Source: Macrostomum lignano
Taxonomy: Eukaryota
NCBI GenBank assembly: GCA_002269645.1
Contig: NIVC01002093.1
Coordinates: forward strand, 62,001 to 126,000
Direction of reading: 5' to 3'
DNA length: 64,000 nucleotides
In this document: piece after piece, positions 6,901-56,905 of the stretch
Numbering within the stretch: position 1 is the stretch's first letter
Layout of the letters: every line of letters starts with the position of its first letter
Translations under genes and position numbers: made by a program
The notes under the pieces: generated by a model
Databases searched by the model: none
Told to the model about the DNA's origin: nothing
What the model saw: the letters and a program-made list of their open reading frames with translations, nothing else

Positions 6901-6947
6901 ATTGGTAAAAATCTGGACATGGTTAGTTTTTGCCATAGACAAAAATA

Positions 6948-8067: not shown

Positions 8068-8353
8068 TCCGTAGGCGCCCGCCGCCAGGGCCGCCGACTC
8101 GGCCTCCGTAGCCTTGACGGCCGCGGCCGCCAGCTGCCACATACGAAAACAATGTCTGTGTAATAGGATTTTGGTTCGGTACGGATATCGTATTAGTTGA
8201 TGTCGTTGGTGGTGGCACACTATATAATAAATAAATAAATAAAAAATAATAGATACATTCATATGATGTCACTTACGATACGTATGTGGCGACCGGCTGG
8301 CCGCGACCGTCAACCTCCAAGATGTCATTTTGTTGGGCAGGGTTGGTGGACAT
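8068..8353 (-). pseudogene. Truncated copy of the helical-hairpin family gene (exon 1 8353-8277, exon 2 from 8155)
   Basis: MSTNPAQQNDILEVDGRGQPVATYVS|gtaagt ... acag|HCFRMWQLAAAAVKATEAESAALAAGAYGP, cut off by the 13-bp satellite element. Confidence 0.7.
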
Positions 8354-11665: not shown

Positions 11666-12033
11666 GTCGTCCCCCCTTCGCCCCAGCGGCCCGACGCGCG
11701 TCGGCCAGATCCCGCTCAATGGCCCGGTGTTGGCCGGGCGTCATCGGGCCGTAGGCGCCCGCCGCCAGGGCCGCCGACTCGGCCTCCGTAGCCTTGACGG
11801 CCGCGGCCGCCAGCTGCCACATACGAAAACAATGTCTGTGTAATAGGATTTTGGTTCGGTACGGATATCGTATTAGTTGATGTCGTTGGTGGTGGCACAA
11901 TATATAATAAATAAATAAATAAAAAATAATAGATACATTCATATGATGTCACTTACGATACGTATGTGGCGACCGGCTGGCCGCGACCGTCAACCTCCAA
12001 GATGTCATTTTGTTGGGCAGGGTTGGTGGACAT
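11666..12033 (-). pseudogene. Second rearranged copy of the helical-hairpin family gene (exon 1 12033-11957, exon 2 from 11835)
   Basis: Same exon structure as 8353-8068; runs further (AYGPMTPGQHRAIERDLADARRAA) before joining the inverted-repeat arm. Confidence 0.65.
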
Positions 12034-13245
12034 GTCTGTAGAAAAAAATGCAAGCATTATCACATTATGTTATGCACAGTTCGATAAATGATAAATAGCA
12101 ATAAATATATTGACAACAATAATAAAAGAAATCGACTTACTATTTGCTTGAAATCGAATGAGCGAATGAGATCGAATAGACTTGATTCAATTGAATGAAA
12201 GAAATCGAATGGAGTTGTTGGGTGATTTTATAAGTCGACTCAACTTAACTGTATGTACAGTTTACACAAGACAATCGTCTATGGCAAAATGCCAATATTT
12301 TGTGTTGATCGATCGATGTTTGGTCTATGGTTCTTTGTCGAAAATATTGTTATCGTTCTCTTGTAATACATATTGATAGATGGATATAGTTTCAATGTGT
12401 AATTTTACACTGACCATAGCAGCAACAGAATACAGCGTACTGTACACTAAAACAAGCTATATGAATTGCCATAGACTAAATAGTCTGACACGCACTGTCT
12501 ATCTAATCTGTGCCAGCGAATGCTTACTGTCAAGAACAAAACGGAGCAAAAGTTTGCTTCAATTGACTGCACCTGATGAAGGTGGCAAAGTTAGGTGCCT
12601 TATAATTGAGTGTTGCATGGGTTCGAATCCCATGTGGTCAGAGTTTTTTTTTCTGTTTAAAGTTTTTTAGAGCAAACATATTTTCAGTATTTTTTTATTT
12701 CTCTTACTCTTATGTTTTTTATACAATTAAATTAATTACAATTTATTATTCTCTTTACACGTTTTTACAGAGTACGGGCGAATCTTTTAGTGCAGCACGT
12801 ATGATTGTTAGTGTAAAAAGTATACTACGATACATGTCGGCAAGCAAGTATTTGGTGTATATATAAGCGTCTGTCGTCTTTAATTTATTTGATATGTTGT
12901 GCCCTTCTTATTGTTCTATCTATATTAATAAAGCTTTTTGGTCAGAAAAATATATTTCTATGTTAATATGTGCTCGATAATACCTAATTTCCTAAGAAAT
13001 GAGGTTTCTCGTCATTCTACTTAAGTCGTCATTAAGTTCACCATGGCAACAAGTAACAAGTCTGTAAAAATACATTTTCCTGTAAAAAAAAACAGTATAG
13101 ATATCAGGGATAAGAAATAATTAATTTCGATGTTTAATATTCTATCTTGACACTAAAATTCCAACAGAAAAATTTTGTTAATACGGGTGTTACATGTTCC
13201 TCAATTCTTTTCGAATTTTTACGATTACATTTGGCTTAAAAGCTA
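11748..13245 (+). repeat. 1.5-kb direct repeat, copy 2
   Basis: Near-identical to 8068-9565. Confidence 0.95.
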
Positions 13246-20886: not shown

Positions 20887-25019
<4,133 letters not shown>

Positions 25020-26450: not shown

Positions 26451-27626
26451 TTAGCGCAACTGCTTTTGATCGGTAATCGAGGTCAAATCACCAGTCAGTA
26501 AGGTCACATCACCAGTCACCAAGGTCACATCACCAGTCACCAAGGTCACATCACCAGTCACCAAGGTCACATCACCAGTCAACATGGTCACATCAACAGT
26601 CAACTGGGTCACATCACCAGTCAATCGGGTCACATCACCATTCAACTTGGTCACATCACCAGTCAACATGGTCACATCACAAGTCAACGTGGTCACAACA
26701 CCAGTCAGTCAGGTCACATTGCCAGTCAGTCGGGTCACATCACCAGTCAATTGGGTCACATCACCAGTCAACTGGGTCACATCACCAGTCAACGCGGTCA
26801 CATCACCAGTCAACGCGGTCACATCACCAGTCAACGCGGTCACATCACCAGTCAACGCGGTCACATCACCAGTCAACGCGGTCACATCACCAGTCAATCG
26901 GGTCACATCACCATTCAACTGGGTCACATCACCAGTCAACATGGTCACATCACCAGTAAACGCGGTCACATCACCAGTCAGTCGGGTCACATCACCAGTC
27001 AGTCGGGTCACATCACCAGTCAACTGGGTCACATCACCAGTCAATCGGGTCACATCACCATTCAACTGGGTCACATCACCAGTCAACATGGTCACATCAC
27101 AAGTCAACGTGCTCACAACACCAGTCAGTCGGGTCACATCACTAGTCAGTCGGGTCACATCACCAGTCAGTCGGGTCACATCACCAGTCAGTCGGGTCAC
27201 ATCACCAATCAACATGGTCACATCACCAGTCAGTCGGGTCACATCACCAGTCAACATGGTCACATCACCAGTCAACGCGGTCACATCACCAGTCAATCGG
27301 GTCACATCACCATTCAACTGGGTCACATCACCAGTCAACATGGTCACATCACAAGTCAACGTGCTCACAACACCAGTCAGTCGGGTCACATCACCAGTCA
27401 GTCGGGTCACATCACCAGTCAGTCGGGTCACATCACCAGTCAGTCGGGTCACATCACCAGTCAGTCGGGTCACATCACCAATCAAAATGGTCACATCACC
27501 AGTCACCAAGGTCACATCACCAGTCCCTAAGGTCAAAACACCAGTAGAGGTCATAACACCAGTAGAGGTCACATCACCAGTCACTAAGGTGATGTGACCA
27601 TCCAATCCAATTAAACGTAGAAACAA
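26451..27626 (-). CDS. 21-bp-repeat gene encoding ~50 heptads (VTxLTGD), probable long coiled coil; one in-frame TGA at 26711-26709
   Basis: ORFs 27626 and 26696 are in the same frame, separated by a CGA>TGA-type stop. Val/Leu at heptad a/d positions; Leu is encoded by both TTG and CTG across units. Confidence 0.5.
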
Positions 27627-28910: not shown

Positions 28911-31900
28911 TCATTCGTCACCGGTGGTACTACTGACACCATTTGAGTCTTTGTCATGTGCGTCATTGGCGTTTTTATTGCCTAAACCGATGCGTGCCTC
29001 TAGTAGATTTACATAGACATTCGTATAGACCAATTCAAAACCTCGTGCGCTATGTAAATCATCCCGGGCGTTAATTAAATCCATCATTTGAACACGTGGA
29101 TGATAAGCATCTAGGACAATTCGGTCCAGCTCTGTATCAATCCGACTGCTGCAGTCGCCGAGAATAACTCGCATGTTGCAATACAGTCTGTAAATAATTA
29201 ATTGATAATTACACTAGAAATTAATTAATGACACAGACAGATATGTTTGTAATTCAACTGATCATTCATCTGCGTCTTACCTGATTCGATCGAGCCGAAT
29301 ACTAACAGTTGCCGGGTTGTTGACCATAGGTGGGCTTGTCTCGGTCACATTGGCGCCAGTGGATCTACACATGTATGTGAAGACATCTCGCCAGTTTGAT
29401 ACCCGAGTGTTAGCCCATACAACTAGGTCCACCAATTGACGCATCTCCATATCAGAGGCGACAAAGTTGTACGCGTTGCCGGATATTAACATTTGGTGTT
29501 GCGCAACAACTGCGCTGTGCATAACATACAACGCGCGCCAGATGTTAAACACAAATCTATGATCGTTACAAGTAGTCTATATGATACACACTATGTATGT
29601 AATTTTACGGGAAATCGTATGTATTATATAATAACAATACAAAACAACCCAGTGGGAAATTCTGGTACGCCCAAGGGTGCGCAGACCGCGGCGCCCGGTG
29701 GCCTGTGGCCGGTAGCGGGGCGCACTCTTTGTCCAGTCGGGGCGCCGGCCTTATACCCGGCGCCCGGTGGACTGCCCAATAAATTAAGGCAAGAATTGGT
29801 TTACTCTACTAACAGTAGTATGCAGGGCTTTTATTGATATATTTTGCTCTGGCAGCAGCCTAGCTTTCTGGTTGTTTCAAAATTGAATTTATTTCCAAAT
29901 AATTTTCAGAGCTATCTGATTTTTTTAAGCAATTGTCTCTTCCATTATAAATTTAAACAACCTTGCTGCTACCTGCTTACGAAGTTTGCCTTTTGTAAAT
30001 TTTTTTGCAGTTCTTTAGAAAATTAGTTTGAGTCTATGAATGAAATCGAATAAGAAACTTAAATGTAATGAAATTTGAATTTATTTAGCGAAGTTAAATG
30101 GAACTGATATTAAAACACAATATTAGAACGAAAAATAGTTAAGTTTTTGGCAACAAAGGTGTTGAAAGAATGTCAGTTTTAAAATCATTTTGACAGCATT
30201 TACTCGTAAAATACGTGCTCTCATAATTAGAAGATTTTAAATAACCAGTCTTGATCGGTTTTCGAACAACTCAGTTTTGGTCGATCTTGCTTAACGGCTC
30301 AGTTTTGCTTTGGCTTCCAAATTCTTTTGATTGGAGCTCCTTTCTGCGCCGCTGGCGCTTCTCGCTGATAGTCATTGTGTGACATTAGTTTGCATGCACA
30401 ATCTCTGATTTATTTAGCTTAGCAATCATAGTATTCATGTTCATTATTCAGTTTAGACACGTTTTTACTCACTAGCAAAAAGAAGTGAATGGCTGTGTTT
30501 TGCACGGCGCTGCCAGAAGCGGGACTTTGAGTCGCTGCACCAAAGACCGTCTTTGCGGGACTTTGAGTCGCTGCCACCAAAGACCGTCTTTGCACGGCGC
30601 TGCCAGAAGCGGGACTTTGAGTCGCTGCCACCAAAGACCGTCTTTGCACGGCGCTGCCAGAAGCGGGGCTTGGAGTCGCTGCCACCAAGACTGTCTTTGT
30701 ACGGCGCTGCCAGAAGCGGGGCTTGGAGTCGCTGCCACCAGAGACTGTCTTTGTACGGCGCTGCCAGAAGCGGGGCTTGGAGTCGCTGCCACCAGAGACT
30801 GTCTTTGTACGGCGCTGCCAGAAGCGGGGCTTGGAGTCGCTGCCACCAGAGACTGTCTTTGTACGGCGCTGCCAGAAGCGGGGCTTGGAGTCGCTGCCAC
30901 CAGAGACTGTCTTTGTACGGCGCTGCCAGAAGCGGGGCTTGGAGTCGCTGCCACCAGAGACTGTCTTTGTACGGCGCTGCAGAAGCGGGACTTTGAGTCG
31001 CTGCCACCAGAGACTGTCTTTGTACGGCGCTGCCAGAAGCGGGGCTTGGAGTCGCTGCCACCAGAGACTGTCTTTGTACGGCGCTGTCAGAAGCGGGGCT
31101 TTGAGTCTGGACTCCGGAAAGCAGCTGGCTTCCTGTGCGATGCGACCGCCCCTTTAATCGGTCACCGCCATGCTTTAGCTGCTGTCTGCAAGTATTTCTT
31201 ACAGATTGTTCAGAGGGCCTGCCGGCTTCAGCGGTCGCGCCATAGATGAATGTGATTGCTTCTGTTAGGAAAAAAGTTGAAAGTTACTATGAATAGCATG
31301 CACTGTGCTCGACTAATTTCTTGATATTTAGCTCTAAAAGTCTCATTGAACGTTGATTAAGTAGACTTACTTTGGAAATGGCTGAGCAGAGTGCTCTGAA
31401 ATCCAAGCTGCGCATCAGTAAGGTTGGTCGCAACTCCAGCAGCAACAGCTCGGCTTCGCATGTCTGACCCGATTAAATTAATAACCGCCTGCATCTCTTT
31501 CGACAAGCTCTCGTTAAGCATTGCCATTAAAGCATCGGACCACTTGTCTCGCTTGCATGAACGTAGCAGGCTCTTCTGTTTAGATTTTTACAGGTGAGAA
31601 TACTTATAGATTATTATTTCAGTGATAGTACTAGTGCGCTTTGAGTAGTAGTTAGAGCATTTCTTCTAATGAAAAGAAAATAAAAAGGTTCCAAAAAGCG
31701 TAGCACGCTCTGCACTTCAGTGCGCATTGCGGTGATTTGTTTGGTCAAACTATTTTCTAATGCTTTCAATTCATTCTTGCGCATAGTAAGTTCGCGTAGG
31801 GCATATAAGGACAGAAACTTGATGCCTCTTGGACTTTCCAGCTCAAAGCTAACACCGGCTTGGATCTGCTCTTCTAGTTTTCTAAGAAAGCCAGAACCAA

Positions 31901-34900
31901 AATTAAAAGATGAAATGGTGGGAGGCGACTTAGGAATCGTCGATCGATCATCTGCTACGAACTCAGCTTCTATTTCAGCTTCCGCCTCAGCTTCCACCTC
32001 AGCTCCCATCTCAGCTTCCACCTCAGCTTCCGCCTCAGCTTCCGCCTCAGCTCCCATCTCAGCTTCCACCTCAGCTCCGATCTCAGCTTCCACCTCATCT
32101 TCCGCTTCAGCTTCCGCCTCAGCTTCCACTTCAGCTTCCGCCTCAGCTTCCGCCTCAGCTTCCATATCGGCGTCTACGCCAGCTTCTGCTTCATCATCAC
32201 TAATAGGAGGCATTGGCGCTAACTGTGCAATCGTAGGCGGATGTTGTTTAGGCAGCAAAGCTGGAGGTTGCAAACAGCGGCTGCTCTTATCTTCGAAGAT
32301 TGCCTCGGAATCGGTGGCTGAGCCGTCTGACAGATTCTGTTTGGGATGGTTACGGCATGAGAAATTATCAAGTTAATGTCAGTTTTAAAGATTATTTTCA
32401 CATTTAATTTCTTCCCTTTTCTTAAAAAATAGTTTAAAAGGTAAAACGGAGAAAACAAAGTTCTCGATAAAAATTATATGGGCTGTGCTTAATTTTACCT
32501 TAGTCTGGTAATGCCTTCGTGCTTTCTTCATGTCACGCTCCTGAAAGACTCTGGGTTGAACCAACTCGAGAATTCGGTTCAGTCGGGTCTTTTTGGCCAC
32601 CAATTCACGCACAAAGCGGAAGCTCCCAGGCTCTAGGTTGTTGCTTAGTATTACCTTTAAATTAATGAGAAAATATGAGCGTACAAATATTAGATCGATT
32701 CAAGAATTTTAACATTTCAATCGTTGGGATCGGTTGCTTACCTGAATAATTAGAGCAGAGTAAAAACAGCCTTCATACAAGGCTTCACACTTCCACTTCT
32801 CAGTGGAGTCCCTCTTTTCTAACCATTCCTCTTCCTTAAGGTTTTGAAAGCCTTCAGGAAGCTTCACTTCGCTTTCCGAGACCTCAACAATTTGACGGTC
32901 GTCTTTAAAGATCACTAAAAACTTCATTGTAGCATGCAGACTAGACTATGCTAGTGCAAAACTGAGTACCAAATAAAGCAAGAGTTTGGAGCTCACACTA
33001 TAGTTTATGCTTATTTAATGATTCAGTGGTTTAGGTTGCTTCTAGAAGCAATTGTCTTCTATAGTTCTTCGAATGAAAAAGGCCGCCCTGGCTTTTCCAA
33101 TTTCATTGGCCCTACCGTCCCCGCATCCATACCTGTCCAATCAGCGCGCACAAACCCCCAAAGGAATAGTTTTCAATTCTTCCCAGCTTTTGTTCATATC
33201 CTTTCTTTAATACGAAATAAGCAATCGTAGTAATTACTTTATTATTATTACAACAGTCAACTATCATCAAAGTCTGATTCGGACGAAAACAATGACAAGG
33301 CAATTGAGGCGACAAGCAAATAAGGATTTGCTGGGCTTGTTCATGGAAGGAGAACAAGAAGCTTTGGAAGACATCGCACTGCAAGAGAAAAAAAGAAAAG
33401 TATTCGAAGCAGATGATTCTGGGAGAGTCGCCGGTTTCATCGCTTCGGAGTCCTCTGTAGCAGAAGTCAATGAAGGTACGGATCCAGATCTTGACAACGA
33501 CAATGGCAGCTATCCTGATTTTGACGAGTTCGCGCGAGTTTGCAGCGATGAAGATGAGGAGATTGACAAGAAAGAGGATGACCGCTCTTTAGAAGATAAA
33601 ATATTCGCCTTGCTGGTAGTCTACTTTTCTTGTTTCAACCTAAGTCGTGGATCTAAAAAATTCCTTGTTGATGGTCTAAGAGACATAGGCTTGCCTGCGC
33701 CGAAGTCTGTCAACTCTATTGAGGCCGTCATCAATGCTGGCGATCCAACGGAAAAATTGGAGCCCATGGGAAAAGGCCATTTTCGCTACATTTCGATTCT
33801 GAAAAATCTAGAACTAATGTTTCGCAAAAACCAGCTGCACATGAAGCCAGAATATCTACAACACGATAGTGAAACTGAGAAGGTTTACAAAATTGAAGCC
33901 ATCGTTAATTTTGACGGCTTGCCTTTGTACCGAGCAAGCCACTTCGGTCTTTGGCCCATACTTATGTCTATTCCCAGCATATTCAGCAGACCTTTTCCAG
34001 TAGCCGTATGGGCTGGTTGTGGCAAGCCACCTCTGAATGATTATCTTCGACAATTTTGCGACGAGGCTAAACGTTTTCTTACGGGTCCAATAAAAATTAT
34101 CGAAAATTTAAGCATCAGCTTCTCGACTATCCGATTTGTTTGCGATGCGCCTGCTCGAGCCTGGGTCTCAGTAACTCAAGGGCACATGTCGTACGTCGGT
34201 TGCATGTACTGCAGGGCTACTGGACCTTATACCGACAACAGAGTAACATTTTCAACGAGCGTCGGGGAGTCTCGTAGCAGCCAACAATACCGAGAGGGAA
34301 AGGAGTCTAACCAGGAAAATAAAAAAATCGCTCTATCGCCCCTTCTAAATTTGCCTAACATTAGTTTTGTCGATGCTTTTCCCCCTGACTACCAGCATGC
34401 CGTATGCCTTGGAGTCACAAGGAAGCTATTTTACCTATTTTTCGACAAATCTAATGGCAAGAAGTGTCTCGTCTATCCCGGTCCGATGAGCCTATTGGGC
34501 GACCGAATTACTATGGCTGCCGGTTGGACACCTTCAAACTTTCAACGAAGACCCCGGAAAATCGACTTGGAACTGAAGCACATGAAGGCTACTGAATTCA
34601 GACAGTACTTGCTGTACCTAGGACCTGTCCTCTTCAAAGGCATTTTAAATGAAGAAAGGTATAACCACTTTCTTTACCTCCATTTCGCCATTTACGCATA
34701 CTCCAACGAAAGGTACTCCAAGTGGTGGACGCAGGCAAAAACTTGCATTGAAGTTTTTGTTGAACGGGCTGCCCACCTTTACGGCCAGAAGTTTATAAGT
34801 TTCAATCTTCACACTATTCTTCATTTGGATGAGTTTGTCCGAAAGCTAGGCAGTTTAAACAACTTTTCGACTTTCCCTTTCGAAAACTTTCTTGGATCTG

Positions 34901-37900
34901 TAAAGCGCCGCGTAAAGGTGACAAGGCACATGGCAGCGCATTCAGTTAAGCAGGTGCTCAGAGTTCGCGATCTTCTGTTGAATGAGCAGCGAATTCCACC
35001 GTTGAAATTCAGCACAAAGCGAGGTGATAATTGTTGCATAATCGACAAAGTATGCGTCCTAATCGAAGCTGTAAGTGAAGCTAATCAAGTCACTGGCAGG
35101 ATTTTACACCCAGTTGACAACATCTACGCCAACCCATATCCATCTTTGCGTCTGGGAATCGGCTTGTACAGGATGACATCTGGTGTTCTAACTGGCACAC
35201 CTGAGCGAAAGTGCTGGATTTTGCCTGCGAATCTGCTTGCCAATCTTGCTGGAGCGGACAGGGATCCAGCAAGCCATTTTTTTGTCATTCCTCTGACAGG
35301 TGACTCCGAGGAGGCCTGATGTAGGACGCGTGAGTCGCAAGTGAGTACTAAAAATATCTTTCTCTGGTTTTTTATATCAATCCGATTTCCTTCTATCTCG
35401 ATTCTCGTATTCCCTGTATTCTGCAATTCTGCAATTTCTTCCTGTATATGTTCTCAGCTTCAACACGCAGACATGATTGTAGATTGTGAGTTAAATATTA
35501 GTATATTACGATGCATACTCGATCGCAACTGCCATTTTATCTTTACTTTTAGGATCCGCAGTTTCACGAGTTTACTACAAGCCTGGCGATCGGTCATTCA
35601 TGAACTGGAGTTATTTTAGAGACTGATTATATTGATTCTATCTTTATTGTTTACATTCTTGAACCCTAGAATTAGGTACAGCTTAAAATTCGGTGTTATA
35701 GAGGCCGGAGGGGTAATTTAGCTCAAAACTGTGTAGGAGGGGTGGAGGGGCCGGAAACTTAGTGGGAGGTGATGCCGCTGTATGTGGCTGAAATGGGGGA
35801 TTTATTTTCTTAAACCCCAGTATACGAGTATGAAATACTAATGGTATTGTATACAGTATTCCTACCTCCAATTCAAGCCAACAGAATTTTTGTAATATTT
35901 TACTTATCCCATTGATAATAATCAACTAGCTGCACAACTGTAATTTCCATCTGTTACCATCTGGTTTTACTTTTAAGCACATATAAAATGCTATGAATAT
36001 TTTCTTTCTTTTGCTGGCACCTATTTTAGGTCAGATCGAATCAATACTTTCCGTATCAAAGTATTTATGTGTTTATGCTAGGTTGTAACTTATAAAATAT
36101 ATATATATATATATATAGTTCAGACCTTGTCAAGCCTCGCACGAAATTCGTCTTTGTTCTTCCTTTATCTTTGGTGCAATATGGGAATAGAAAAAACTTG
36201 ATGACCTGCACTGATAAGGAGTCAGGACAGTTTGTTTGTTTCGCATAGGTTCGCTTAAGCAGGCAAGAACGGTACAACGTAGAAATTCCCATATCACTTC
36301 TCTAGCCTTTCTTCTAACCCCCCCCCACCCAACTGAAATGAATTGGCCAAAATTAGCTGTCACCTCTAGGTTAAAATAATTCCTTGCATTGCCCTGTCAT
36401 TACGGGTTATTGCCACTGGCCAGGAAATTCAAAACATTTTTCTAAGAGCAACTCAAAATGAGTAAGCTTTATACAGGCTATAATTGATGAGAGATTTCTG
36501 TTAATGAGAGATAAAGCCCACACGGGTTTTATTGATGTCGGGTTGTAAAAGACGATCGCAAATAGAGAACAATATAGCGAGAATATTCAAGCTGGCGGAC
36601 GTGCGCCGAGCTATAATTTTCTGTTAACTCGGGGATTCAGTAAGACTAGAATAATTGAGTGGCAAAAACTGTCATGAGAACGCAAAGGCACTTTGAAACC
36701 TTTATGATTCAGTGGATTTATTCATCCGGAAAAATGACAAGGCGGGGGTTAGATTGTTATTTATTCATGACCTGTCCCATTTGAGCTCTGACCGCCTCTG
36801 AATATGAAAACTGAGAAAATATCTATGTCTATGTATCCCTCCTTATCAAAATGTGACTGAGTGACTGTGCCCTACTCGTAATCGGGGAGATAAATGAAGG
36901 GGAGACAGGGGAGACAGTCTCCTATCTCCAATCTCCCATGTCTCTTATTTGCCATTATGCAGTTAACTGGGCCCGTCATGCATAGCCTACTGCAGGCTGC
37001 AGGGGTCAGCAAACTCCAGCCCACGGGCCACATGCGGCCCGCAGTCTCTCTATCCAGCCCTCGGGTCCTTTCTAACTTCCCATGCCAATAACAATCCAGC
37101 CCGCTCAAGGTTTGCATCTCTTCTCAGCTTTTTTGCTAATTTCTTCTCCTTTTCTCATCAAAATCTCCCCTCTCTCCTCCTTTCCCCTCTTTCCTTGCTC
37201 CCAGTGGCGCAACCAGGGGGGGGGGGGGGGGGCGGTCCCCCCCCTTAGGCGGAGACCCAGAAAAAATTGAAGGGGGGACCAAGCGAATTTTCGCCAAAAA
37301 CAGAGCCTCCCCTCCGCCCCCTCCCTCACGGGACTTTACCTTCCAGAATCCGCCCCCCCCCTCAAAAAATTTCTGGTTGCCCTACTGCTTGCTCCCTTCC
37401 TCTGACATCTCTCCTTTCGCCTCTCTCCTCTCTCCCTTTATCTCCCTTCTTTCTCTCATCTCGCCTCTCTCCTCTCTTCCCTCCTCTCACATCTCACATC
37501 TCTCCCCTCTCCCCTCCACTCTCCTCCTTCTGGCCCGCAGTCTTGAGCTAGATTCTCTATCTGGCACTTAAAGTAAAATAGTTAGCCAATCCCTCGCAAG
37601 GAATTTCGATCATTACAATGAGCAAAAGTTGACATTAACAAAATTTTGGCGGGCGCGTTGTGCCAAGCCTGAACAGCTTCTCTAGACAGCACTCTGTGCT
37701 CTCCAGAATTACTTGAACTGTTAGCAGTGGCGCAAGCAGAATTTCTTATGTGGGGGGGGGGCGGATTCTGAAGGGTAAAGACCCAAGGGGGCGGAGGGGT
37801 GGCTCTGTATTTTGGCAAAAATGCGCTTGGTCCCCCTTTAATACAGCTTGGCAAACCTGATTGATTTTCCGGGATTTCCCCTGTCCTAGTTGTATTTCTC

Positions 37901-42025: not shown

Positions 42026-43266
42026 ATGGACCAACAGCGAGACGATGTCACCCAGTGTGCATACTGCGGGATGGCGATCCCTAGCCGCAGTGGGATGCGT
42101 CGACATTTCATACGCTCACATCGCGACGTGGTCGACACTTTCGACTGGACCACAGTGCCAGAACAGGCGAGACCGGCTCAAAACACGTCCTATGAGACTC
42201 GAGCGGCTACTGTATGGCGACTGATTAGGCTGAACGGACGCGGTCAAGCCGATTGTATTGGTAACATGCAATCGTGCCAATACTGCGGAAAGTCGGTCGT
42301 TGACATATTTGGACACCGCAGGCGTTGCAATCGTAAACAAGCAACCGCCATTGACACAATTGCCGGACACAGCCAATCTGACCAGTCGGCGCACTCGCAG
42401 TCAGACGAGAATGTGGAGACTGATCTTCGACTCATGCGGACGAGCAGAGGCCGACACTAGTCGATACTGGTATACAGTGTGACATTCGGTGTGACACTGT
42501 AGATGCTGCTACCGGACCAAATAGTCGACTCATGGTTGACACGGCCATACAGACAGACAATATAAGACCATATTGTCAATACATTTATATTGTCGGGTAT
42601 GACTTTGACGCCGGGTTTGACACGGAGGTTAATTATCCGATCGACTGTACGGTAGAGCACAACCAAGTTGATGTGTCGGCCTATTGTCCAGATGTTCAAT
42701 TGGTTGAACACGTTGAGACATCTGTTCACATTGAGTCATCCACAACGACGCAGCACACTCGAGCACGAGACGACATCGACTTGTCGCCTGTTGTACTAGT
42801 CACAGAAACGGACAGCGCCATCGACGAAATGCAATGCGTGTTCGATTCTGTCGCCAATGTACATACGGTAGACATCGACGCGGTTGATTGTAGCCATTCT
42901 ATGACGACTATGGGTCACCAGTCCGACGACAGTTGTGCCACGATTGCAGCTATCGACGAAGATCGGGCGGCATGTTCCACGCCACTGTCGAGCACAAGTA
43001 GCCACTCTACTATTGCTGCTATGGACTCAGATTGCGATATGTGCTACACACCGCCGTCGTCGCCCGTAACCGGCTGTGTCGGTCGAACGCGCGCCAGTTT
43101 AGATGGACCAGTAAGCGTACCGGCTAGCCGATCCGACCTGACCATGTCGAGATTAATCAAGCGTCTTAGACGAACAGCCTATTGTACAGCTGGTGTCTCT
43201 AAGGCCACGTTAACCCGATATGGCAGGCGGGTCAGGATGCCAGTATGCAAACACTGTTCACATTGA
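42026..43266 (+). CDS. Double zinc-finger protein with an acidic tail (one frameshift near 42421 joins ORFs 42026 and 42532)
   Basis: CAYC...RHFIRSH and CQYC...GHRRRC. The second frame is open from 42424 (SSTHADEQRPTLVDTGIQCD...VDTAIQTD) to 43266. Confidence 0.6.
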
Positions 43267-44844: not shown

Positions 44845-45095
<251 letters not shown>

Positions 45096-45103
45096 TCGGC
45101 TCA

Positions 45104-45604
45104 TCACAGTAGTCCGAGTGCTCGCATATGGGCAGCCACACCGCCATCAATGATGTGCTGATAGCGCGCCTTTAAGTGCAGTACATGCCCAATGGTACGA
45201 CCCAGCAGATCAGACACGGCCTGTGTTGACGGAGCCTTGTCGTGCTGTACGCCGAGCAACAATCGGACGTCCCGCGCTCGTTCGGCAGATGGTGACTGAC
45301 GCAACCAGTCGCGCAGCTCGCCGAAGATGTCTAGCAGATTTTGGATGTCTGCTGCTAGAGCTATCGACGTGGGCTGCAGACCAGGGTTGTCACTCATCGT
45401 AGTCCCGTCGTCATCCAGCAGGTCGCCGAGTTGTGATACCTCTAGGCGAACCAATAGCGCTTGATGAACGGGCGCAAGTAAGATGACACCAGGACTACGC
45501 GGATATTCAACACCAGTGTCGTCCCTTACATAATTGTCGTTTGCGTCGGGTTCAGCGCCGCCGTAAAAATGTACAGGAAAACCTGGTGGGATCCGTTCTG
45601 CCAT
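45104..45604 (-). CDS. Hypothetical 166-aa protein, unknown family
   Basis: ATG-initiated, non-repetitive, GC-richer than its flanks, with amphipathic-helix-like composition. Confidence 0.5.
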   Translation of the reverse strand: MAERIPPGFPVHFYGGAEPDANDNYVRDDTGVEYPRSPGVILLAPVHQALLVRLEVSQLGDLLDDDGTTMSDNPGLQPTSIALAADIQNLLDIFGELRDWLRQSPSAERARDVRLLLGVQHDKAPSTQAVSDLLGRTIGHVLHLKARYQHIIDGGVAAHMRALGLL

Positions 45605-46177: not shown

Positions 46178-46860
46178 ACCGAACTGATTGACTGAGTTGA
46201 CTGAACTGACTGACTGACTGACTGACTGACTGACTGACTGACTGACTGACTGACTGACTGACTGACTGACTGACTGACTGACTGACTGACTGACTGACTG
46301 ACTGACTGACTGACTGACTGACTGACTGACTGACTGACTGACTGACTGACTGACTGACTGACTGACTGACTGACTGACTGACTGACTGACTGACTGACTG
46401 ACTGACTGACTGACTGACTGACTGACTGACTGTTGAACCGAGCTGACTGAGCTGACCGACTGAGTTGACCGACTGGGCTGACTGAACTGACTGAACTGAT
46501 TGACTGAGATTAATGAGCTGACTGAGCCGACTGACTGGGTGAAATAAGCTGACTGACTGACTGACTGACTGACTGACTTAGCTAACTGAGTTGTCTGAGC
46601 TGACTGAACTGACTGACTGACTGGCTGAAATAAGCCGATTGACTAAACTAAACTAAACTGACTGAAATGGCCGACTCATTGGGTTGATTAACCGATTGAC
46701 TGACTGAATGAGCTGACTATATGAACTGACTGACTGTTTGAACCGAACTGACTGAGCTGACCGACTGATCTGACTGACTGACTGAACTGATTGACTGAAC
46801 TGACTAACTGAATTGGCTGAGCTGATTGACCCTATCCGACTGACTGACCGACCGAACTGA
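46178..46860. repeat. (GACT)n microsatellite with degenerate flank
   Basis: Direct reading. Confidence 0.95.
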
Positions 46861-47662
46861 CAATCAATCAATAAATTAACAAATCAATCAATCAACCAAT
46901 CAATCAACAAAAAAATCATCAAATCGACCAATCGATCAGTCATTCAATCTTTCAATCAATCCGTTATCAAACACATTCAACCAACAACTTAATGTTGTGG
47001 CTAGTACGTAAGCATTAATCAATAAATAGCATATATGGCGACGATTATAAATCAATACAAAACAATTAAACTATTAATTAAACAATTAATATAGAATAGT
47101 AATTAAAAAGAAAAGAAAAACAAGATGATATCGAGCGCGATATTTTTTTGTAATTAACAATCCACCAGCCAATCGCTTGGTCTCGCTTCTCGCTTGCATA
47201 TTGCATTATTAGATAGACTGTTATTAATATATTAGTTAGAATGCGCTCGATATTATCTTGGTGTATGAAACGCACACAATCAAGCTAAATCGCTCTATAC
47301 TATTTACATTGCAATAATTCAACAATAATAAACACACTAATAATCACATTATTAATCACCATCTATATACACAAATGGTTCATGTAAGAATCAGTGACAT
47401 GAAAACGCACATACATCTATGCATATATATACACGTGTGCGCGCATAATTTTATGTACAGTTGTGCTACATATATTCATTCACATATGGTTGCGTCTACA
47501 ACTGAGTGAGGCTTGATGATAAGTTTCGATTTCGTTTCACATGGTCGAAGCTTGATTTGTTTTTCTAAGAAATAATTCCTAATTACCTCCTTGTTTGTGT
47601 TGGACACAACCATTGTGATGTGGCGTAATCGGTAAAAAAATAGATATAAATCGATATTTTAC

Positions 47663-50600
47663 TCAATCAAGCATCTCTGTGCGCCGAACGACACGACCTG
47701 ATCGGGTGACAATACAGCTCCTGTGTTGTTGCGGTTGCTGTTGATCCGGTCGACCCCCACGCGATCCAGTCGCAACGCAGTCAATTGCATCAACGGACTG
47801 CGATCGTCGTTGGGTGATGTTCGAACGCATACTAGATGTTGATAGTGATCTGCGTCGCCTGCTCGATGATCGCACATTCGATGTCGCAGCAATCGACTGA
47901 TCAACAGCCACTGAAGACGTAGCACTGTCAGTCGATGTACCAGACAAACGAGTGCGCCGCTCCGACCGCGTCTGGACTAATCGCCGATCGTCAGCATCAT
48001 CGTTAGCAGCAGCCAATCGACTTAAATCGGCAGGTACGCTCGATCCAATGCGTGTACGTACAGAGGAGAGCAACGACCCCGATTTAGGTACAGATCGGTT
48101 GTCACAGCGGCGGCGATGGCTAGTCTGTACATTTGGCGTATGAGTCGCGTCATCGCTTCTTTGACAGCCAGTTGTTGCCCCGTCGTCATCGGCGTCTTCG
48201 TCAGCATCGTCATCATCGTCGGCGTCTAGATCGACGTTCGGCAAATTGCTAATACCACGTCGTTTTTTTGTTGGTGGCGAATGTGGCGACTTGGATCGCG
48301 ACATTCTGCTCGACGACGATGACAATGTCGACGCCAACTGGTGAGAGTTTGATTTCAGACGACTCTTACCAGACGACGGCGAGCGCGGAGACGGCGGTAA
48401 TGAGCGACATTTGCTGGACGATGGCGGACGCGGCGACGGCGATTTAGAGAGGCGACATTTGTCGGACGATGGCGGACGCGGCGACGGCGATTTAGAGAGG
48501 CGACATTTGCCGGACGATGGCGGACGCGGCGACAGCGATTGAGAGTGGCGACATTTGCCAGACGTCTTAGTCGGTGCAGTATCAACGTCGGCTTGATCGT
48601 GCTGCTCTGGCAATACGATGCTAACGCTTCGTCGCCGTCGTCTGCTTCCCGATGTCGTTGTCATCGTCGTCGCCGACTCACTGATCTGCTGCTCGATTGC
48701 TGTCGCAAGCGTCGACGCATCCAAGATGGACGGTTGGACTTTTGCGCATTTTGATTTGCTCCGCTCGTCACCAGTTTGGTTGACGGCGAACTTTTCGAAA
48801 CAGTCCCTCAAGTCGGTAGCAACTTCGAGTCGGGCTGCGTCAATTGCTGCGGCGGCGTAGTACCGGGTGACAACAGGCTTCGAAGTGTCGTACAAATGCG
48901 TCACCTGTTCGATCTGGTCCGGATGAAAACGCGCATACGCAGACAATTGATTGCGCCGTCCATCGCTGGCCCGGTAATTGCGACCAATCACTCGAACCGA
49001 ACCGTCGACCACGAGCCTCGAATAGTCACCAGTGACTCGAGCCGTCCCGTTGGAAGTAGGGAAGATATATTGCATTTCATCGGGCACTTGCACATCTAGG
49101 TCTTCGAGCGCGGGCGTGACAAACTTTTCGCACCATAGAATGAACGATTTACACAATCGTCTCGGTGACAACAGTGTTGCACCACGGCCTCGCGAACCTT
49201 GCTTGTGTGGCACCTCGCTGGGTGGTAATCGCGTTATGACGGTATCCATACTGGAGCCTTTGTTTTTTAACGCGTCTTCGAGGTGATGCCGACACAGATA
49301 GATCCATGGCAATACACGATTGCTATGGAATATTGCAGTGCCCAAGAATGCCAACTCGCGACTGATTGGCATTATGAAATCGCGCCATCTTCCTCGCGGA
49401 GAATTCGTTTGATTGACCAGCCGCGCAATGTCGGACCAGGCACCTTGTGTTGGTAAATCTGACCAGGAATGTTTCTCGATCATATCGACCAATTCCAGTA
49501 GCCTGTTTCTTACGAGGTCATACTCTTCGACAGTCAGGAACAACTCGGTGTATTTTTGTTGTCGTGCATCATCATTCAGATGGTACCGATTGTCCTGTTG
49601 TCGGCTGACTCGTCCGAGTTGCGCCTGTGTGTATTATAAGAGAAGCAAAAATTCATCTTTATGTATCATCATTATCATCATTATCGTTCTTATCATCATC
49701 AGCATCGTCATCACCACCATCATATGCACAATCATAGTTTATAGTTCTAATCTACACATAATATAGATTATAATTTCAAAAATATAATCAAGCAAACAAA
49801 CAAACAAACAAACAGGTACTTACGTAGACAGCATCGATTCGAGGTATTAGAAAAGCAGACACTGTCTTTCGATGGTATAGATTGCTGGGCAACTTCTTTA
49901 CTCCGCTGGCTATTCCATGTAATAGTCTGGCCGCGGTAGTGACGTCATCTGCTGCGCCAGTGAATACGCCGTTGGGTGGTTCCGATAACCGGAGTGCCCT
50001 AATTACAGTGATGGCACCGAAATCAGACTCATTTTCAAATAGAGTCTTGACTGCGGCTAGGATGCACTGTAATTGGCATGCTTTTACTCCGGCGGTACTT
50101 GCTTGCCAGACACCGCGGGTTTTCATCTCTGTCAAATCTGTGGCAACTTGGTGCGGAGCATTTAACCAAGTCTCCAGACTGACACCCAGCTTATGTTTTA
50201 ATTTGGCAAGCGTTCCTCGAACCGCAGTGGTCAGTTGTTTCCGACGATGGACATGCGACTTGTTTTCTTCGATCTTGTTATTAATTTTCCACCAAATATC
50301 GACAAGTCGATTAGTCATGTCCTCGGCGATAGACTGTGCTTCACCATAGTCGATCACGGCAAGTGGATCATCAGTCTCGCTCACACTGCTGTCGGAACCA
50401 CCCGCATTGTCATCCGCTTCGTCCTGAATGTCGGCATCGGAACCAGATGACACATCGGCGGCTTGGTCGTTATCAGGCGGCGCTGGTACGACAATGACTC
50501 TGCCTTGCTGCTCCGAATCTGCAGTTTCATTGTCCTTGGCACACTGTTCGATCGCGTCCAATAAGCTGGCAACAATTTCGTCGTCTGATGTCGCGACGAC

Positions 50601-51711
50601 GTTACCAACCGCGATCTCATCTCCTACTTCTTGGTGCCGTTGTACCGCGCTGGCCAGTCTACCGATAGCAGGACGCTTGACCTGACTGATGCTCGTCTCG
50701 AGTGCACGGACCAGCTGTTTAGACGCCAATTCGACGTGAACACGGAGTACACGTGTCATATCGACAATGTCTACGTCGCTAGTGTCCATGTCTGGACGAA
50801 GCTGTTCTGCAAGCCTGTCAAGTTGACTAGCTGTTTTTTGCAGATCAGTCAAATAGCCTGTTGGTTGTTTAAGCGTAAAACAATATCCATTTACTATGTA
50901 ATTGGTACACGTCGATAAGTATACAATAATATTGTGCGATACTATCTACTAATATAGAAGAATTTAACGATGAATTATTATTACCTTGGAATTGGCGCGC
51001 CTTTCGTATTGTCGCATCGGCGATGCTGTTGCCGACCGAATCATTGTTAGACGATGGATGAACATGGTCGTCGCCAGATGGTCTCTGTTCGACTGGGTTG
51101 TACAACTCGTCGACAGATTCGATGACACACGGTCTAACATGATCAGGCGCGGCATTGGTCGACCCGGTTGCGAACTTAGCTGCCGATTGGCGTTCGGTGT
51201 TCGATGCCGGGGTCACCGTTTGAGCGCGGCGGCGTTCACTGTTGGCTGTCTTGGTCGCAGTTTGAAAATTGGAATCACTGCTTGGTCCAACGTCTACACC
51301 GTCGAGTAAACCACTTGTAGACGGACCAGCGGATAAACTGACGACCGGCTGTTCAACAGTCTGTTGCGCAATCATATCTGTTTGGCGTGCGTTTGTTGCG
51401 TCAGGCTTTCGCTTGCATGATCGTTTTAGATGTCTTTCGACACATCGAACGATCCGATGGCAATGCGGACACATTGTCATGTTGTATGTGTCACCATCGC
51501 GCTGCAGCCTTACCGCCTTCCAAACAGCAATCGCCCTAACAAATACTGGCAACTCGGAAGATGGACCATTCTTTTCTTCCACTGTAGCCAAGTCAAAATT
51601 GCGGACGAATTCTATATGACGTCTTACTAGATGACGCGCCATACTCCGCTGACTAAACAACTGTGCGCAAACAGGACACGCCGCGTTGTCGCTACGGTGA
51701 TTGTCGGCCAT
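47663..51711 (-). CDS. Three-exon 1240-aa protein: two zinc fingers + core-binding-like helices + tyrosine-recombinase-like catalytic domain + Ser/Arg-rich tail
   Basis: Exons 51711-50985, 50857-49824 and 49624-47663. Introns GTAATA...CAG (phase 1) and GTAAGT...CAG (phase 0) join the three ORFs in frame (3723 nt). Motifs: FHSNR, PHKQG..G.A, YIFPTSNG, ASDGRR, VTHLYDTSKPVVTRYY. Confidence 0.72.
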
Positions 51712-51927
51712 TATGTTGACTAATATAATAATATAATATAAATAAATTTCTAAATTTCTATGCTTATAGCAGTTAGGTTACGAACAAAGAATATGCAAAA
51801 AAGGAAGAAAGAATTCCGTATAAGGTTTGTCAATTTAAAATAACAGTAAAAACGCGAGATACAAATTCTTATATCTATGGCAAATAGGTCTAGCTGAGAC
51901 CGATTTTGTACAGGCCTTGGTGTCTGA

Positions 51928-52305: not shown

Positions 52306-53549
52306 CCCCACCACTAAAGCACGAAGGGGGGGATTAAAACATCAATGTGTTAAGACATAGGAGTACATCAACCAAGTACACCAATCAATTGCGTCAGCCA
52401 TGTACAATAGCCAAATGCACCGACCAAATGCGCCAGTCAAATGCGCCGACCAAATGCGTCAGCCAAATGCGCCGAGTTCTCATTGGCTTGTCTAACATAT
52501 TGACCAAATTCGCCGACCAAATGCGCCGGCTTCTCATTGGCTTGTCTAACATATAGACCAAATGCGCCGACCAAATGCGCCGACCAAATGCGCCGACCAA
52601 ATGCGCCGGCTTCTGATTGGCTTGTCTAACATATTGACCAAATGCGCCGACCAAATGCGCCGACCAAATGCGCCGACCAAATGCGCCGGCTTCTCATTGG
52701 CTTGTCTAACATATTGACCAAATGCGCCGACCAAATGCGCCGACCAAATGCGCCGACCAAATGCGCCGGCTTCTGATTGGCTTGTCTAACATATTGACCA
52801 AATGCGCCGACCAAATGCGCCGGCTTCTCATTGGCTTGTCTAACATATAGACCAAATGCGCCGACCAAATGCGCCGACCAAATGCGCCGGCTTCTGATTG
52901 GCTTGTCTAACATATTGACCAAATGCGCCGACCAAATGCGCCGGCTTCTCATTGGCTTGTCTAACATATAGACCAAATGCGCCGACCAAATGCGCCGACC
53001 AAATGCGCCGGCTTCTGATTGGCTTGTCTAACATATTGACCAAATGCGCCGACCAAATGCGCCGGCTTCTCATTGGCTTGTCTAACATATAGACCAAATG
53101 CGCCGACCAAATGCGCCGACCAAATGCGCCGGCTTCTGATTGGCTTGTCTAACATATTGACCAAATGCGCCGACCAAATGCGCCGACCAAATGCGCCGGC
53201 TTCTGATTGGCTTGTCTAACATATTGACCAAATGCGCCGACCAAATGCGCCGGCTTCTCATTGGCTTGTCTAACATATAGACCAAATGCGCCGACCAAAT
53301 GCGCCGACCAAATGCGTCGACCAAATGCGCCAACTGCTGCCAACTGCGCCGACCAAATGCGCCGACGAGTTCTTGTCTATGGCTTGTATATGTGCATAGG
53401 GGAAATCTGTCACGCTAGTGCTGCATGATAAATGTTCATATATTCTATGGTCTATGGGCTAGGGAAATCCTATTAGGCGAGGGGAATCCGAAATATAGTC
53501 GGCGCATTTGGTCGGCGCAGTTGGCAGCAGTCGGCGCAATTGGCGGCTA
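52306..53549 (-). mobile_element. 13-bp-satellite element, copy 2 (inverted relative to 6948-8067)
   Basis: ccaaatgcgccga arrays plus shared unique ends (…caattggcggcta at 53549). Confidence 0.75.
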
Positions 53550-53600
53550 CAATTTTGTGAGAAACATGCTGTTGTTCACAACAAATGTGTTTTGTTTTAG

Positions 53601-54960: not shown

Positions 54961-55424
54961 TCAACTATCATATTTAAACTCTATTGCAGAAACCAATGTA
55001 TATAATATTATACTCACCGGGTCTAGACCTACGGCCATTCGGCTGGCCGTTTCAAGCCGGTCGCCCCACCGGTCGGCGGCTCGGCGCGCATCAACCAAGT
55101 CGCGCTCGACGGCGCGACGTTGGCCTGGCGTTGCCGGGCCGTAGGCGCCCGTCGCCAGGGCCGCCGCCTCGGCCTCCACAGCCTTGACGGCCGCGGCCGC
55201 CAATTGCCACATACGAAAACAATGTCTGTGTAATAGGGTTTCGGTTCGATACGGATATCGTATTAGTTGATGTTGTTGCTATTTGGCACACCATGTGATA
55301 AATAAATAAATAAATAATAATAGATACATTCATATGATGTCACTTACGATACGTATGTGGCGACCGGCTGGCCGCGACCGTCAACCTCCAAGACGTCGTT
55401 TTGGTTGGCGGGGTTGGCGGACAT
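54961..55424 (-). CDS. Helical-hairpin family gene H4: exon 1 55424-55348, exon 2 from 55225
   Basis: MSANPANQNDVLEVDGRGQPVATYVS|gtaagt; acag|A HCFR MWQLAA...AYGP...RWGDRL. A possible further GTGAGT donor at 55017; 3' exons not resolved. Confidence 0.7.
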
Positions 55425-56870
55425 GTCTGTAGAAAAAATGCAAGCATTATCACATTATGTTATGCACAGTTCGATAAATGATAAATAGCAATAAATATAT
55501 TGACAACAATAATAAAAGAAATCGACTTACTGTTTGCCTTGAAAGAAATCAATAAGAAATCGAATGGAGATCGAATGGAGTTGAATGAAAGAAATCGAAT
55601 GGAGTTGTTGGGTGATTTTATAAGTCGACTCAACTTAACTGTGTGTACAGTTTACACAAGACAATCGTCTATGGCAAAATGTCAATATTTTGTGTTGATC
55701 GATCGATGTTTAGTCTATGGTTCTTTGTCGAAAATATTGTTATCGTTCTCTTGTAATACATATTGATAGATGGATATAGTTTCAATGTGTACTTTTACAC
55801 TGACCATAGCAGCAACAGAATACAGCGTACTGTACACTAAAACAAGCTATATGAATTGCCATAGACTAAATAGTCTGACACGCACTGTCTATCTAATCTG
55901 TGCCAGCGAATGCTTACTGTCAAGAACAAAACGGAACAAAAGCTTGCTTCAATTGACTGCAGTCTGACTGATGAGATGCGTACCGACCGGAACCTGATGA
56001 AGGTGGCAAAGTTAGGTGCCTTATAATTGAGTGCTGCATGGGTTCGAATCCCATGTGGTCAGAGTTTTTTTTCTGTTTAAAGTTTTTTTAGAGCAAAAAG
56101 ATTTTCAGTATTTTTTTTCTCTTACTCTTATGTTTTTTATACAATTAAATTAATTACAATTTATTATTCTCTTTACACGTTTTTTACAGAGTACGGGCAA
56201 ATCTTTTAGTGCGGCACGTATGATTGTTAGTGTAAAAAGTATACTACGATACATGTCGGCAAGCAAGTATTTGGTGTATATATAAGCGTCTGTCGTCTTT
56301 AATTTATTTGATATGTTGTGCCCTTCTTATTGTTCTATCTATATTAATAAAGCTTTTTGGTCAGAAAAATATATTTCTATGTTAATTTGTGCTCGATAAT
56401 ACCTAATTTCCTAAGAAATGAGGTTTCTCGTCCTTCTACTTAAGTCGTCATTAAGTTCACCATAGCAACAGGTAACAAGTCTGTAAAAATACATTTTCCT
56501 GTAAAAAAAACAGTATAGATATCAGGGATAAGAAATAATTAATTTCTATGTTTACTATTCTATCTTGACGCTAAAATTCCAACAGAAAAAATTTGTTAAT
56601 ACGGGTGTTACATGTTCCTCAATCCTCAATACGATTACATTTGGCTTAAAAGCTAGAGTTGTTCAATCGATTTTAAATAACAGGTCCGTCCATGGATAAT
56701 AATTATAATAAGCCGTTGTTAATTTTTTACACTTGTTTTATTTGTGCGCATAATTGATTGTTAGATAAAGCAAGTGACAATACATTTCACTATTAATCGT
56801 AGTTGTCGAATCTAAAGTCAGCAATTAATTAAGACTAAATACAAGTAATTATATTTCATTGCATTGTACC
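55130..56870 (+). repeat. Third, more diverged copy of the 8068-9780 block
   Basis: ORFs 55500 and 55770 nearly equal 8502 and 8700; similarity continues to gcattgtacc at 56870. Confidence 0.9.
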
Positions 56871-56905
56871 TGTTATTTAAACTGGTGATAATTTATCAAA
56901 GCACC

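Follow-up and report, generated by a model that had tools for sequence, protein, structure and literature searches.

Does the flatworm Macrostomum lignano possess an overlooked tyrosine recombinase (YR)? This question is raised by a locus on the minus strand of contig NIVC01002093.1 (NCBI GenBank assembly GCA_002269645.1). The window analysed here is the whole stretch of 64,000 nucleotides (nt) from position 62,001 to 126,000 of that contig, and all coordinates refer to its first letter as position 1. Between positions 51711 and 47663, an initial annotation that was based on the letters of the DNA alone had described a hidden, spliced gene for a zinc-finger protein with a Crypton-type YR domain. 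The gene is real: it is a nuclear gene of M. lignano with several exons and alternative splicing, and it is equivalent to the UniProt entry A0A1I8G604. The gene model is therefore already public; the possible YR-like nature of the protein's conserved core is new, but unproven.

Structure of the gene

Three open reading frames (ORFs) succeed one another on the minus strand, namely 51711-50869 (280 amino acids, aa), 50852-49788 (354 aa) and 49543-47663 (626 aa). They had been proposed to be joined in frame by two canonical introns of matching phase, and the proposed coordinates and phases are exact. The joined coding sequence comprises three exons, encodes 1240 aa and has one stop, which is located at its terminus. 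Its elements are:

51711-50985, minus strand: exon 1 (727 nt), with the ATG at 51711-51709; aa 1-242 plus 1 nt, containing a double zinc finger and an acidic low-complexity linker
50984-50858, minus strand: intron 1 (127 nt), GTAATA..AACAG, phase 1, GC content 27.6%
50857-49824, minus strand: exon 2; aa 243-587, containing acidic linker and the N-terminal helical half of the conserved core
49823-49625, minus strand: intron 2 (199 nt), GTAAGT..CACAG, phase 0, GC content 28.1%
49624-47663, minus strand: exon 3; aa 588-1240 with the TGA stop at 47665-47663, containing the C-terminal half of the core and a 336-aa Ser/Arg/Pro-rich tail

The open frames extend over 656, 385 and 302 codons; the longest frame observed in 300 shuffles of the region has 237 codons. 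Both introns contain in-frame stops, and their low GC content contrasts with that of the exons (50-56%); the flanks have 32-37%. The open frames and the junctions mark a real gene, far above chance. The second junction is moreover reproduced by three M. lignano models in UniProt (P0001, P0007 and P0008), which read ...RIDAVY|AQLGRVSRQQDNRY... and thus use the acceptor that gives the exon start 49624. The gene is not hidden, because a UniProt model exists: A0A1I8G604 (P0009; 1084 aa, named "C2H2-type domain-containing protein") is essentially identical to the joined protein across the shared length.

A conserved core with two distant relatives

Only one part of the protein is conserved outside M. 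lignano:

48746-50342, minus strand: conserved core, approximately aa 415-880 (about 465 aa), split by intron 2

An exhaustive phmmer search with aa 1-904 against 1.84 billion representative proteins yielded four real matches. Two of these, P0001 and P0002 (UniRef A0A1I8GN39 and A0A1I8J916), are M. lignano sequences that are 98% identical; the other two are distant homologues, P0003 with 26% and P0004 with 32% identity. Word-indexed searches with alignments of the family added M. lignano fragments and P0003 only. P0003 is encoded on L001, a contig of 2375 nt from a brackish microbial-mat co-assembly of the Joint Genome Institute (JGI; PMC8605020). Its frame is broken by one 1-nt frameshift and one in-frame stop (at about 1199-1220), and tandem repeats flank it on its two sides (1-170 and 2144-2375), with units of 12 nt and about 20 nt. 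L001 may represent a decaying copy, or the interruptions may be assembly errors. P0004 is encoded on L002, a contig of 1772 nt from the Logan run SRR31628394, and possesses an intron at a different position.

Once the interruptions had been corrected, the alignment of the three sequences spanned about 450 columns, with 24-30% identity and 50 invariant columns. Among the invariant blocks are WW-K, FLTxxE, H-x-W-x3-P-x2-G-x-W, ELAF, R-x2-PW, EV-x2-K, PD-x(2-4)-F and RR-x3-S. A pattern scan of JGI metagenomes with the family alignment gave 600 matches, none of which is a relative, and the degenerate pattern R..PW..L...[HY][LF][ED]D occurred at 28 metagenomic loci, none related according to tblastn. 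The viral collection IMG/VR contained no match. The core is thus a conserved orphan domain of a new three-taxon family, whose YR-like nature is unproven.

Candidate catalytic residues

Four residues of the core had been nominated as catalytic from one sequence, with the numbering of ORF 49543. They are conserved in the distant homologues and follow one another in the order and with the spacing of a YR active site:

49316-49318, minus strand: R690 (R76 of ORF 49543), candidate Arg-I in ELAF..R..PW; invariant in all three sequences and located on the YR Arg-I column
49202-49204, minus strand: K728 (K114), candidate beta-hairpin Lys; the sole invariant Lys among the seven of the region
48953-48958, minus strand: R810-R811 (R196/197), candidate Arg-II; the doublet is invariant in all three sequences
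48857-48862, minus strand: Y842-Y843 (Y228/229), candidate nucleophile; L001 shares Y843, which lies 33 residues past R810

The motifs quoted in support of the nomination (FHSNR, PHKQGSRGRGA, YIFPTSNG, ASDGRR and HLYDTSKPVVTRYY) are all present. R690, K728 and R810 are invariant across the three taxa, and Y843 is kept in the one homologue that reaches this position. In the same region six of 20 Arg residues are invariant, and according to our arithmetic the rough joint chance that four residues named beforehand are all conserved is 0.003-0.01. When hhalign is forced to align the sequences globally, the core runs colinear with the YR domain; Arg-I and Arg-II each coincide with an invariant Arg, and the Tyr is at most one column from an invariant Tyr. 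Of 250 column shuffles, one brought two catalytic positions into register with invariant residues, and not one did so for three. The spacings R690-K728-R810-Y843 amount to 38, 82 and 33 residues; the corresponding ranges of 24 reference YRs are 23-42, 72-109 and 30-35. A random placement of the invariant R, K and Y residues of the family meets all three windows with a probability of about 0.003. Local contexts that resemble YR boxes are FLTxxE at the start of the domain, R..PW..L, IFPtsNG and LG(T)S-x7-Y. The equivalence with the catalytic residues of YRs derives from a non-significant alignment; the coincidences are suggestive, and they make R690, K728, R810 and Y843 candidates for a catalytic set.

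Tests of the whole domain

The following observations weigh against a YR assignment. At the level of residues, both active-site histidines are replaced. The His of the HxxR motif corresponds to Ser, Met and Thr in the three members, and the His/Trp-III position is occupied by Thr in both sequences that cover it; among 33 reference YRs, the HxxR His is present in 32 and a Trp or His at the LGH/W box in all 33. The replacement of the second His had been noted correctly, although the missing first His was under-stated. In the Starship Captain HhpA the first-His position is occupied by a Tyr, and this His is not strictly required in Cre (PMC10104507); with these precedents, its loss is not disqualifying in principle. 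Furthermore, the family alignment consists of only three sequences, and the residue-level statistics were partly designed after the alignment had been seen. Because of this post hoc design and the many ORFs and families that are open to pattern-matching, the effective P-value is weaker than 0.003.

None of the three members matched a profile of Pfam (including Phage_integrase PF00589 and DUF3504 PF12012), NCBIfam or PHROGs at E-values up to 10. A phmmer search of the PDB and an hmmsearch with the family profile yielded nothing relevant there, including no topoisomerase. For a more sensitive comparison, a profile of the YR catalytic domain was compiled from 33 sequences that Kojima & Jurka 2011 supply in Additional file 4. 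Among them are Cre, lambda Int, XerD, Tn916 Int, DIRS and CryptonA/I/F/S; 18 members of the profile are YRs of Cryptons, and the Crypton-derived ATF7IP is also included. In leave-one-group-out hhalign comparisons, each YR group recognised the remainder at 93-99.6% probability, and CryptonA/I/F/S and DIRS detected one another at 97-99.6%. Controls from outside the profile were recognised as well: the dead DUF3504 domains of WOC, ZMYM and QRICH1 at 97.5%, KCTD1 at 98%, KIAA1958 at 95%, VLF-1 at 92% and Flp at 75% (E-value 3e-5). Altogether, 15 control groups reached probabilities of 75-99.6%. The M. lignano family reached a probability of 0.1% with an E-value of 0.49 and a score of 10.1. This is the null level, as 100 column shuffles of the family gave a score of 10.5 +/- 1.8, and no clustering with the CryptonA, I, F or S clades was seen in these profile tests. 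With hmmsearch --max and the YR profile, the family ranked below random ORFs of the window.

Structure prediction was too uncertain to speak for or against an integrase fold. An AlphaFold2 model of the single sequence had a predicted local distance difference test (pLDDT) score of 37.6; a second model, based on an alignment of five rows that is too shallow, had a pLDDT of 48.4 and a predicted template modelling (pTM) score of 0.25. Both low-confidence models are all-helical and lack a beta-hairpin, and a Foldseek search with the second one found no match in the PDB at E-values up to 0.001.

The assignment to the Crypton-type YRs made by the initial annotation is therefore not supported by any whole-domain test, be it Pfam, NCBIfam, PHROGs, the PDB, hhalign or hmmsearch. 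As judged from its sequence, the gene cannot be filed as a Crypton, as a DUF3504 gene or as a demonstrable member of the YR superfamily.

Zinc fingers, linker and tail

The two N-terminal zinc fingers that had been claimed are present as ligand patterns in the sequence:

51613-51678, minus strand: zinc finger 1, aa 12-33, C-x2-C-x11-H-x4-H, C2H2/BED-like
51415-51471, minus strand: zinc finger 2, aa 81-99, C-x2-C-x9-H-x4-C, C2HC type
48372-48564, minus strand: tandem repeat in the tail, about four copies of a 48-nt unit that encode repeated SGKCRLSKSPSPRPPS units

The only Pfam match of zinc finger 1 is zf-Di19, which is weak and below the cut-off (E-value 0.069). The zinc fingers are followed by an acidic, low-complexity segment (aa ~100-415) and, beyond the core, by the Ser/Arg/Pro-rich tail (aa ~905-1240). 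The protein also contains a KKRR motif.

A second gene of the window (42026-43266, plus strand) opens with a paralogous double zinc-finger module of about 100 aa (42026-42460). The two modules share 35% identity (E-value 2e-16), and all metal ligands of both fingers are conserved. The first finger of the paralogue passes the Pfam zf-BED cut-off (21.1 bits compared to 20.6). The open frame that follows the module (42424-43263, plus strand) has no similarity to the core described above. Since a paralogous copy opens the neighbouring gene, the zinc-finger module looks like a lineage-specific DNA-binding cassette that is common to at least two neighbouring convergent genes.

Comparison with known recombinases and their relatives

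The YRs of Crypton and DIRS elements (Kojima & Jurka 2011, PMC3212892) resemble the M. lignano core in the order of Arg-I, Lys, Arg-II and Tyr and in the ranges of the spacings. The local contexts of the motifs are similar, and the helical region that precedes them in the core could correspond to a core-binding domain. Common to these elements and the M. lignano gene are, in addition, the possible presence of introns and the absence of terminal repeats (PMC3212892). In contrast to the Crypton and DIRS enzymes, the core shows no detectable profile similarity, lacks both histidines and is longer (about 465 aa); the protein has N-terminal zinc fingers and long disordered regions, and its mobility is only putative.

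A second comparison is offered by the DUF3504 proteins ZMYM2/3/4, WOC, QRICH1, KCTD1 and KIAA1958, which are domesticated Cryptons. Their architecture is analogous, in that a host gene with several exons encodes zinc fingers and, C-terminal to them, a domain derived from a recombinase, and the canonical catalytic set is incomplete both there and in the M. lignano core. DUF3504 has lost the Tyr and Arg-II (PMC3212892), but is clearly YR-like in sequence, as is evident from the 95-98% probability in our controls. The M. lignano family displays the reverse combination: R, K, R and Y are kept, whereas the profile probability is 0.1%. Moreover, the protein does not match PF12012, and its fingers are BED/C2H2-like and not of the MYM type.

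Starship Captains (DUF3435) such as HhpA provide a precedent for a functional eukaryotic YR with a replaced active-site His and, furthermore, for a YR clade that was recognised late and mainly by means of structure prediction (PMC10104507). Unlike the M. lignano core, with which they were compared by description only, the fungal Captains keep an RK(H/Y)RY pentad and have a Pfam family of their own. Topoisomerase IB and Flp are outliers of the fold that use R-K-R-Y chemistry and have very weak or no similarity to phage-type integrases. Because Flp reached just 75% in our control, a true YR relative could escape sequence methods. For topoisomerase IB and Flp, a relationship with the M. lignano core would be demonstrable by structure alone.

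What the core might be

Weighing these results, we consider it possible, if short of probable, that aa ~600-880 form a very divergent YR-like domain for breaking and rejoining DNA with a minimal R-K-R-Y site. The protein consists, in this order, of two zinc fingers (BED/C2H2-like and C2HC), a long acidic disordered linker, the two-part core of about 465 aa and the repeat tail. On the YR reading, DNA would be bound by the zinc fingers together with the helical N-terminal part of the core, and the C-terminal half of the core would clamp it. Y843 would attack a phosphodiester that is activated by R690, R810 and K728. The catalytic set kept would thus comprise Arg-I (R690), the Lys (K728), Arg-II (R810 or R811) and the Tyr (Y843), with both active-site histidines replaced.

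An equal weight is given to a competing explanation, which is just as conceivable: the core may be a new kind of domain, composed mostly of helices and without kinship to YRs, whose likeness to the R, K, R and Y set arose by coincidence. The gene would then encode a nuclear zinc-finger factor restricted to its lineage, such as a regulator of chromatin, transcription or RNA processing with a tail resembling Arg/Ser-rich (RS) domains, and the basic residues would bind nucleic acid or a partner without catalysis. This explanation accounts for the negative outcome of all whole-domain tests in which every YR control, dead ones included, was detected. It is also consistent with the almost purely helical low-confidence models that lack a beta-hairpin, with the absence of both histidines, and with the acidic linker, the SR/SP-rich tail and the KKRR motif, which are typical of nuclear regulators. 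However, it names no mechanism, and it leaves unexplained why four residues named beforehand are invariant and occur in the order and spacing of a YR.

If the core is a YR-like domain, a further and more doubtful step would be to regard it as an unrecognised His-less R-K-R-Y clade of eukaryotic YR-like enzymes. The distance of such a clade from Cre, Crypton and DIRS would match that of topoisomerase IB; the domain would be fused to zinc fingers in the flatworm and would also occur in eukaryotes of the microbial mat and of the sequencing run. It could comprise a new DNA transposase or a newly domesticated recombinase that acts on the M. lignano genome. For a YR-like protein, a host or domesticated gene is somewhat more likely than an autonomous Crypton-type transposon. 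This preference is a weak one and is founded on the multi-exon structure, the distant 5' and 3' exons, the long disordered regions and the lack of terminal repeats or of a second copy in the window. The patchy distribution, the several near-identical copies and the broken copy on L001 point to a transposon instead.

It is regarded as improbable that the gene encodes the transposase of a Crypton-like DNA transposon that is, or recently was, active; such a mobile element would encode a YR and move by way of a circular intermediate. The distribution is indeed extremely patchy, with four real matches among the 1.84 billion representative proteins, and there are at least seven near-identical M. lignano models with at least three variants. 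The frameshift and the in-frame stop of L001 resemble a decaying copy, tandem repeats flank both L001 and the gene in the window, and terminal repeats are absent from animal Cryptons, in which introns can occur (PMC3212892). On the other hand, the family did not cluster with any Crypton clade in the profile tests, and the 64-kb window contains no second copy of the core. Tandem repeats occur everywhere in the window, and the gene is bounded by micro- and minisatellites only, with no terminal inverted or direct repeats. A transcript that appears to draw on distant 5' exons and on a 3' exon at a distance of 2.4 kb fits a host gene. In addition, the M. lignano copies may represent ohnologues or haplotigs of a duplicated genome. 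A chance run of open frames or a dead pseudogene is very improbable: the tail is of low complexity and open in several frames and the homologue on L001 is broken, but the three frames clearly exceed the shuffled maximum of 237 codons, the splice signals are canonical, exons and introns differ markedly in GC content, the core is conserved in distant taxa, and independent gene models exist.

If the protein is a functional R-K-R-Y recombinase, it would represent a new deep branch of eukaryotic YRs and would imply that nature can do without both "conserved" histidines. M. lignano, a model for regeneration and the germline in which RNA interference and transgenesis are available, would moreover gain a candidate site-specific recombinase or a new transposon superfamily. 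If the core is not a YR, the analysis still defines the limits of an orphan domain of about 465 aa with two distant relatives among 1.8 billion proteins and assigns coordinates to the gene model and its alternative splice forms, and the "Ras-GEF" names of six of the seven public models are left without support.

Alternative splice forms and public gene models

Seven near-identical M. lignano models (P0001, P0002, P0006, P0007, P0008, P0009 and P0010) with at least three sequence variants are available from UniProt; P0009 belongs to the 90% cluster of P0001. They differ in the use of splice sites. At junction 2, the acceptor in P0009, P0006, P0010 and P0002 lies 30 nt downstream of that of the 1240-aa model (AVY|DNRY; exon start 49594; intron 49823-49595), which preserves the frame. 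The segment of 10 aa that is kept by the upstream acceptor, AQLGRVSRQQ, contains Q589. As Q589 is invariant in the distant homologues, the upstream-acceptor form is the conserved one. The acceptor of P0009 at junction 1 lies 51 nt downstream (ARQFQ|EQLRPD; exon start 50806; intron 50984-50807), again in frame. P0009 further differs at both ends, which can be traced to the following elements of the window:

48369-45954, minus strand: possible intron 3, with the donor G|GTAAGA at 48369 and the acceptor TTTTTTTAAG ending at 45954, with (T)7AAG at 45955-45954
45953-45940, minus strand: alternative terminal coding mini-exon of 14 nt, AAATAACGCGGTGA, which reads E-I-T-R-stop with the preceding G
55212-55018, minus strand: possible upstream exon A, with an in-frame ATG at 55212 and the donor GTGAGT at 55017, inside a dispersed repeat of 1.6-1.75 kb
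53776-53686, minus strand: possible upstream exon B, 100% identical to aa 70-99 of P0009, with the donor G|GTATAG at 53685

By means of intron 3, the C-terminus of P0009, ...SPRSPSS-EITR, is reproduced exactly from the window. If this intron is used, the protein lacks the last 268 aa of the tail of the 1240-aa model. An ab initio predictor is unlikely to choose a 14-nt exon 2.4 kb downstream over an open frame of 268 codons; this argues indirectly, via the terminal exon, for a model that is based on transcripts. The final 268 aa of the tail would therefore be isoform-specific. At least a part of the Ser/Arg/Pro-rich repeat tail is optional. Long (CAAT)n and (ACTG)n microsatellites are located just 3' of the gene at 44845-45097 and 46183-46971, which we place in the putative intron 3, and an ORF of 166 aa without any family match occupies 45104-45604 (minus strand).

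At the 5' end, exon B would be joined to the acceptor AG at 51721-51720, so that the next exon would start at 51719, 8 nt before the ATG at 51711. The frame of the P0009 extension is open from the ATG at 55212, and aa 100-354 of P0009 map to exon 1. Because it is located inside a dispersed repeat, exon A may be a repeat-derived 5' exon or promoter instead of true coding sequence. The repeat is AT-rich, 1.6-1.75 kb long and present in three copies of the same orientation with 92-93% identity (8066-9781, 11686-13245 and 55076-56871). Its end supplies the putative exon A. At 11340-11942 the repeat lies within an ORF of 200 aa that has the same start, MWQLAAAAVKA... The repeat probably represents a non-autonomous transposable element that could act as a promoter or exon. 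The putative 5' intron contains a complex minisatellite (52330-53558) with units of 13, 54, 67, 80 and 121 nt and the core GACCAAATGCGCC. An inverted copy of this minisatellite, which is 75% identical, lies 45 kb away (6939-7976). The minisatellite is open in several frames and gives rise to spurious ORFs.

Look-ups of the exact proteins (P0001 and the ORF products of exon 1 and exon 3) revealed no other contigs or transcript copies on record. The automatic name "Ras-GEF domain-containing protein" is attached to six of the seven models (the fragments P0001, P0002, P0006, P0007, P0008 and P0010). This name is the sole support for a Ras guanine-nucleotide exchange factor, an identity that we rejected as hardly credible, because neither RasGEF nor RasGEF_N gave a Pfam match even at E-values up to 10, no RasGEF structure was among the PDB matches of the sequence or the family profile, and the full-length model P0009 is named "C2H2-type domain-containing". 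The name appears to be an annotation artefact.

Other elements of the window

The window is eukaryotic and rich in micro- and minisatellites; scans of it for transfer RNAs and Rfam families gave no matches. An intact ORF of a non-long-terminal-repeat retrotransposon (21201-25019, plus strand; 1272 aa) contains the domains Exo_endo_phos_2, RVT_1 and RNase_H and looks potentially active. An ATG-initiated ORF of 675 aa (33292-35319, plus strand) has no Pfam match at E-values up to 10; its C-terminal FPFENFLGSVKRRV motif may resemble the transposase-associated region of the DUF4218/EnSpm type. Minisatellite arrays at 26470-27626, 30422-31283 and 31614-32376 are open in several frames on both strands. 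They yield pseudo-proteins of the "VTSPVN" and "AEAEAE" kind and are thus a source of false ORFs in the M. lignano genome.

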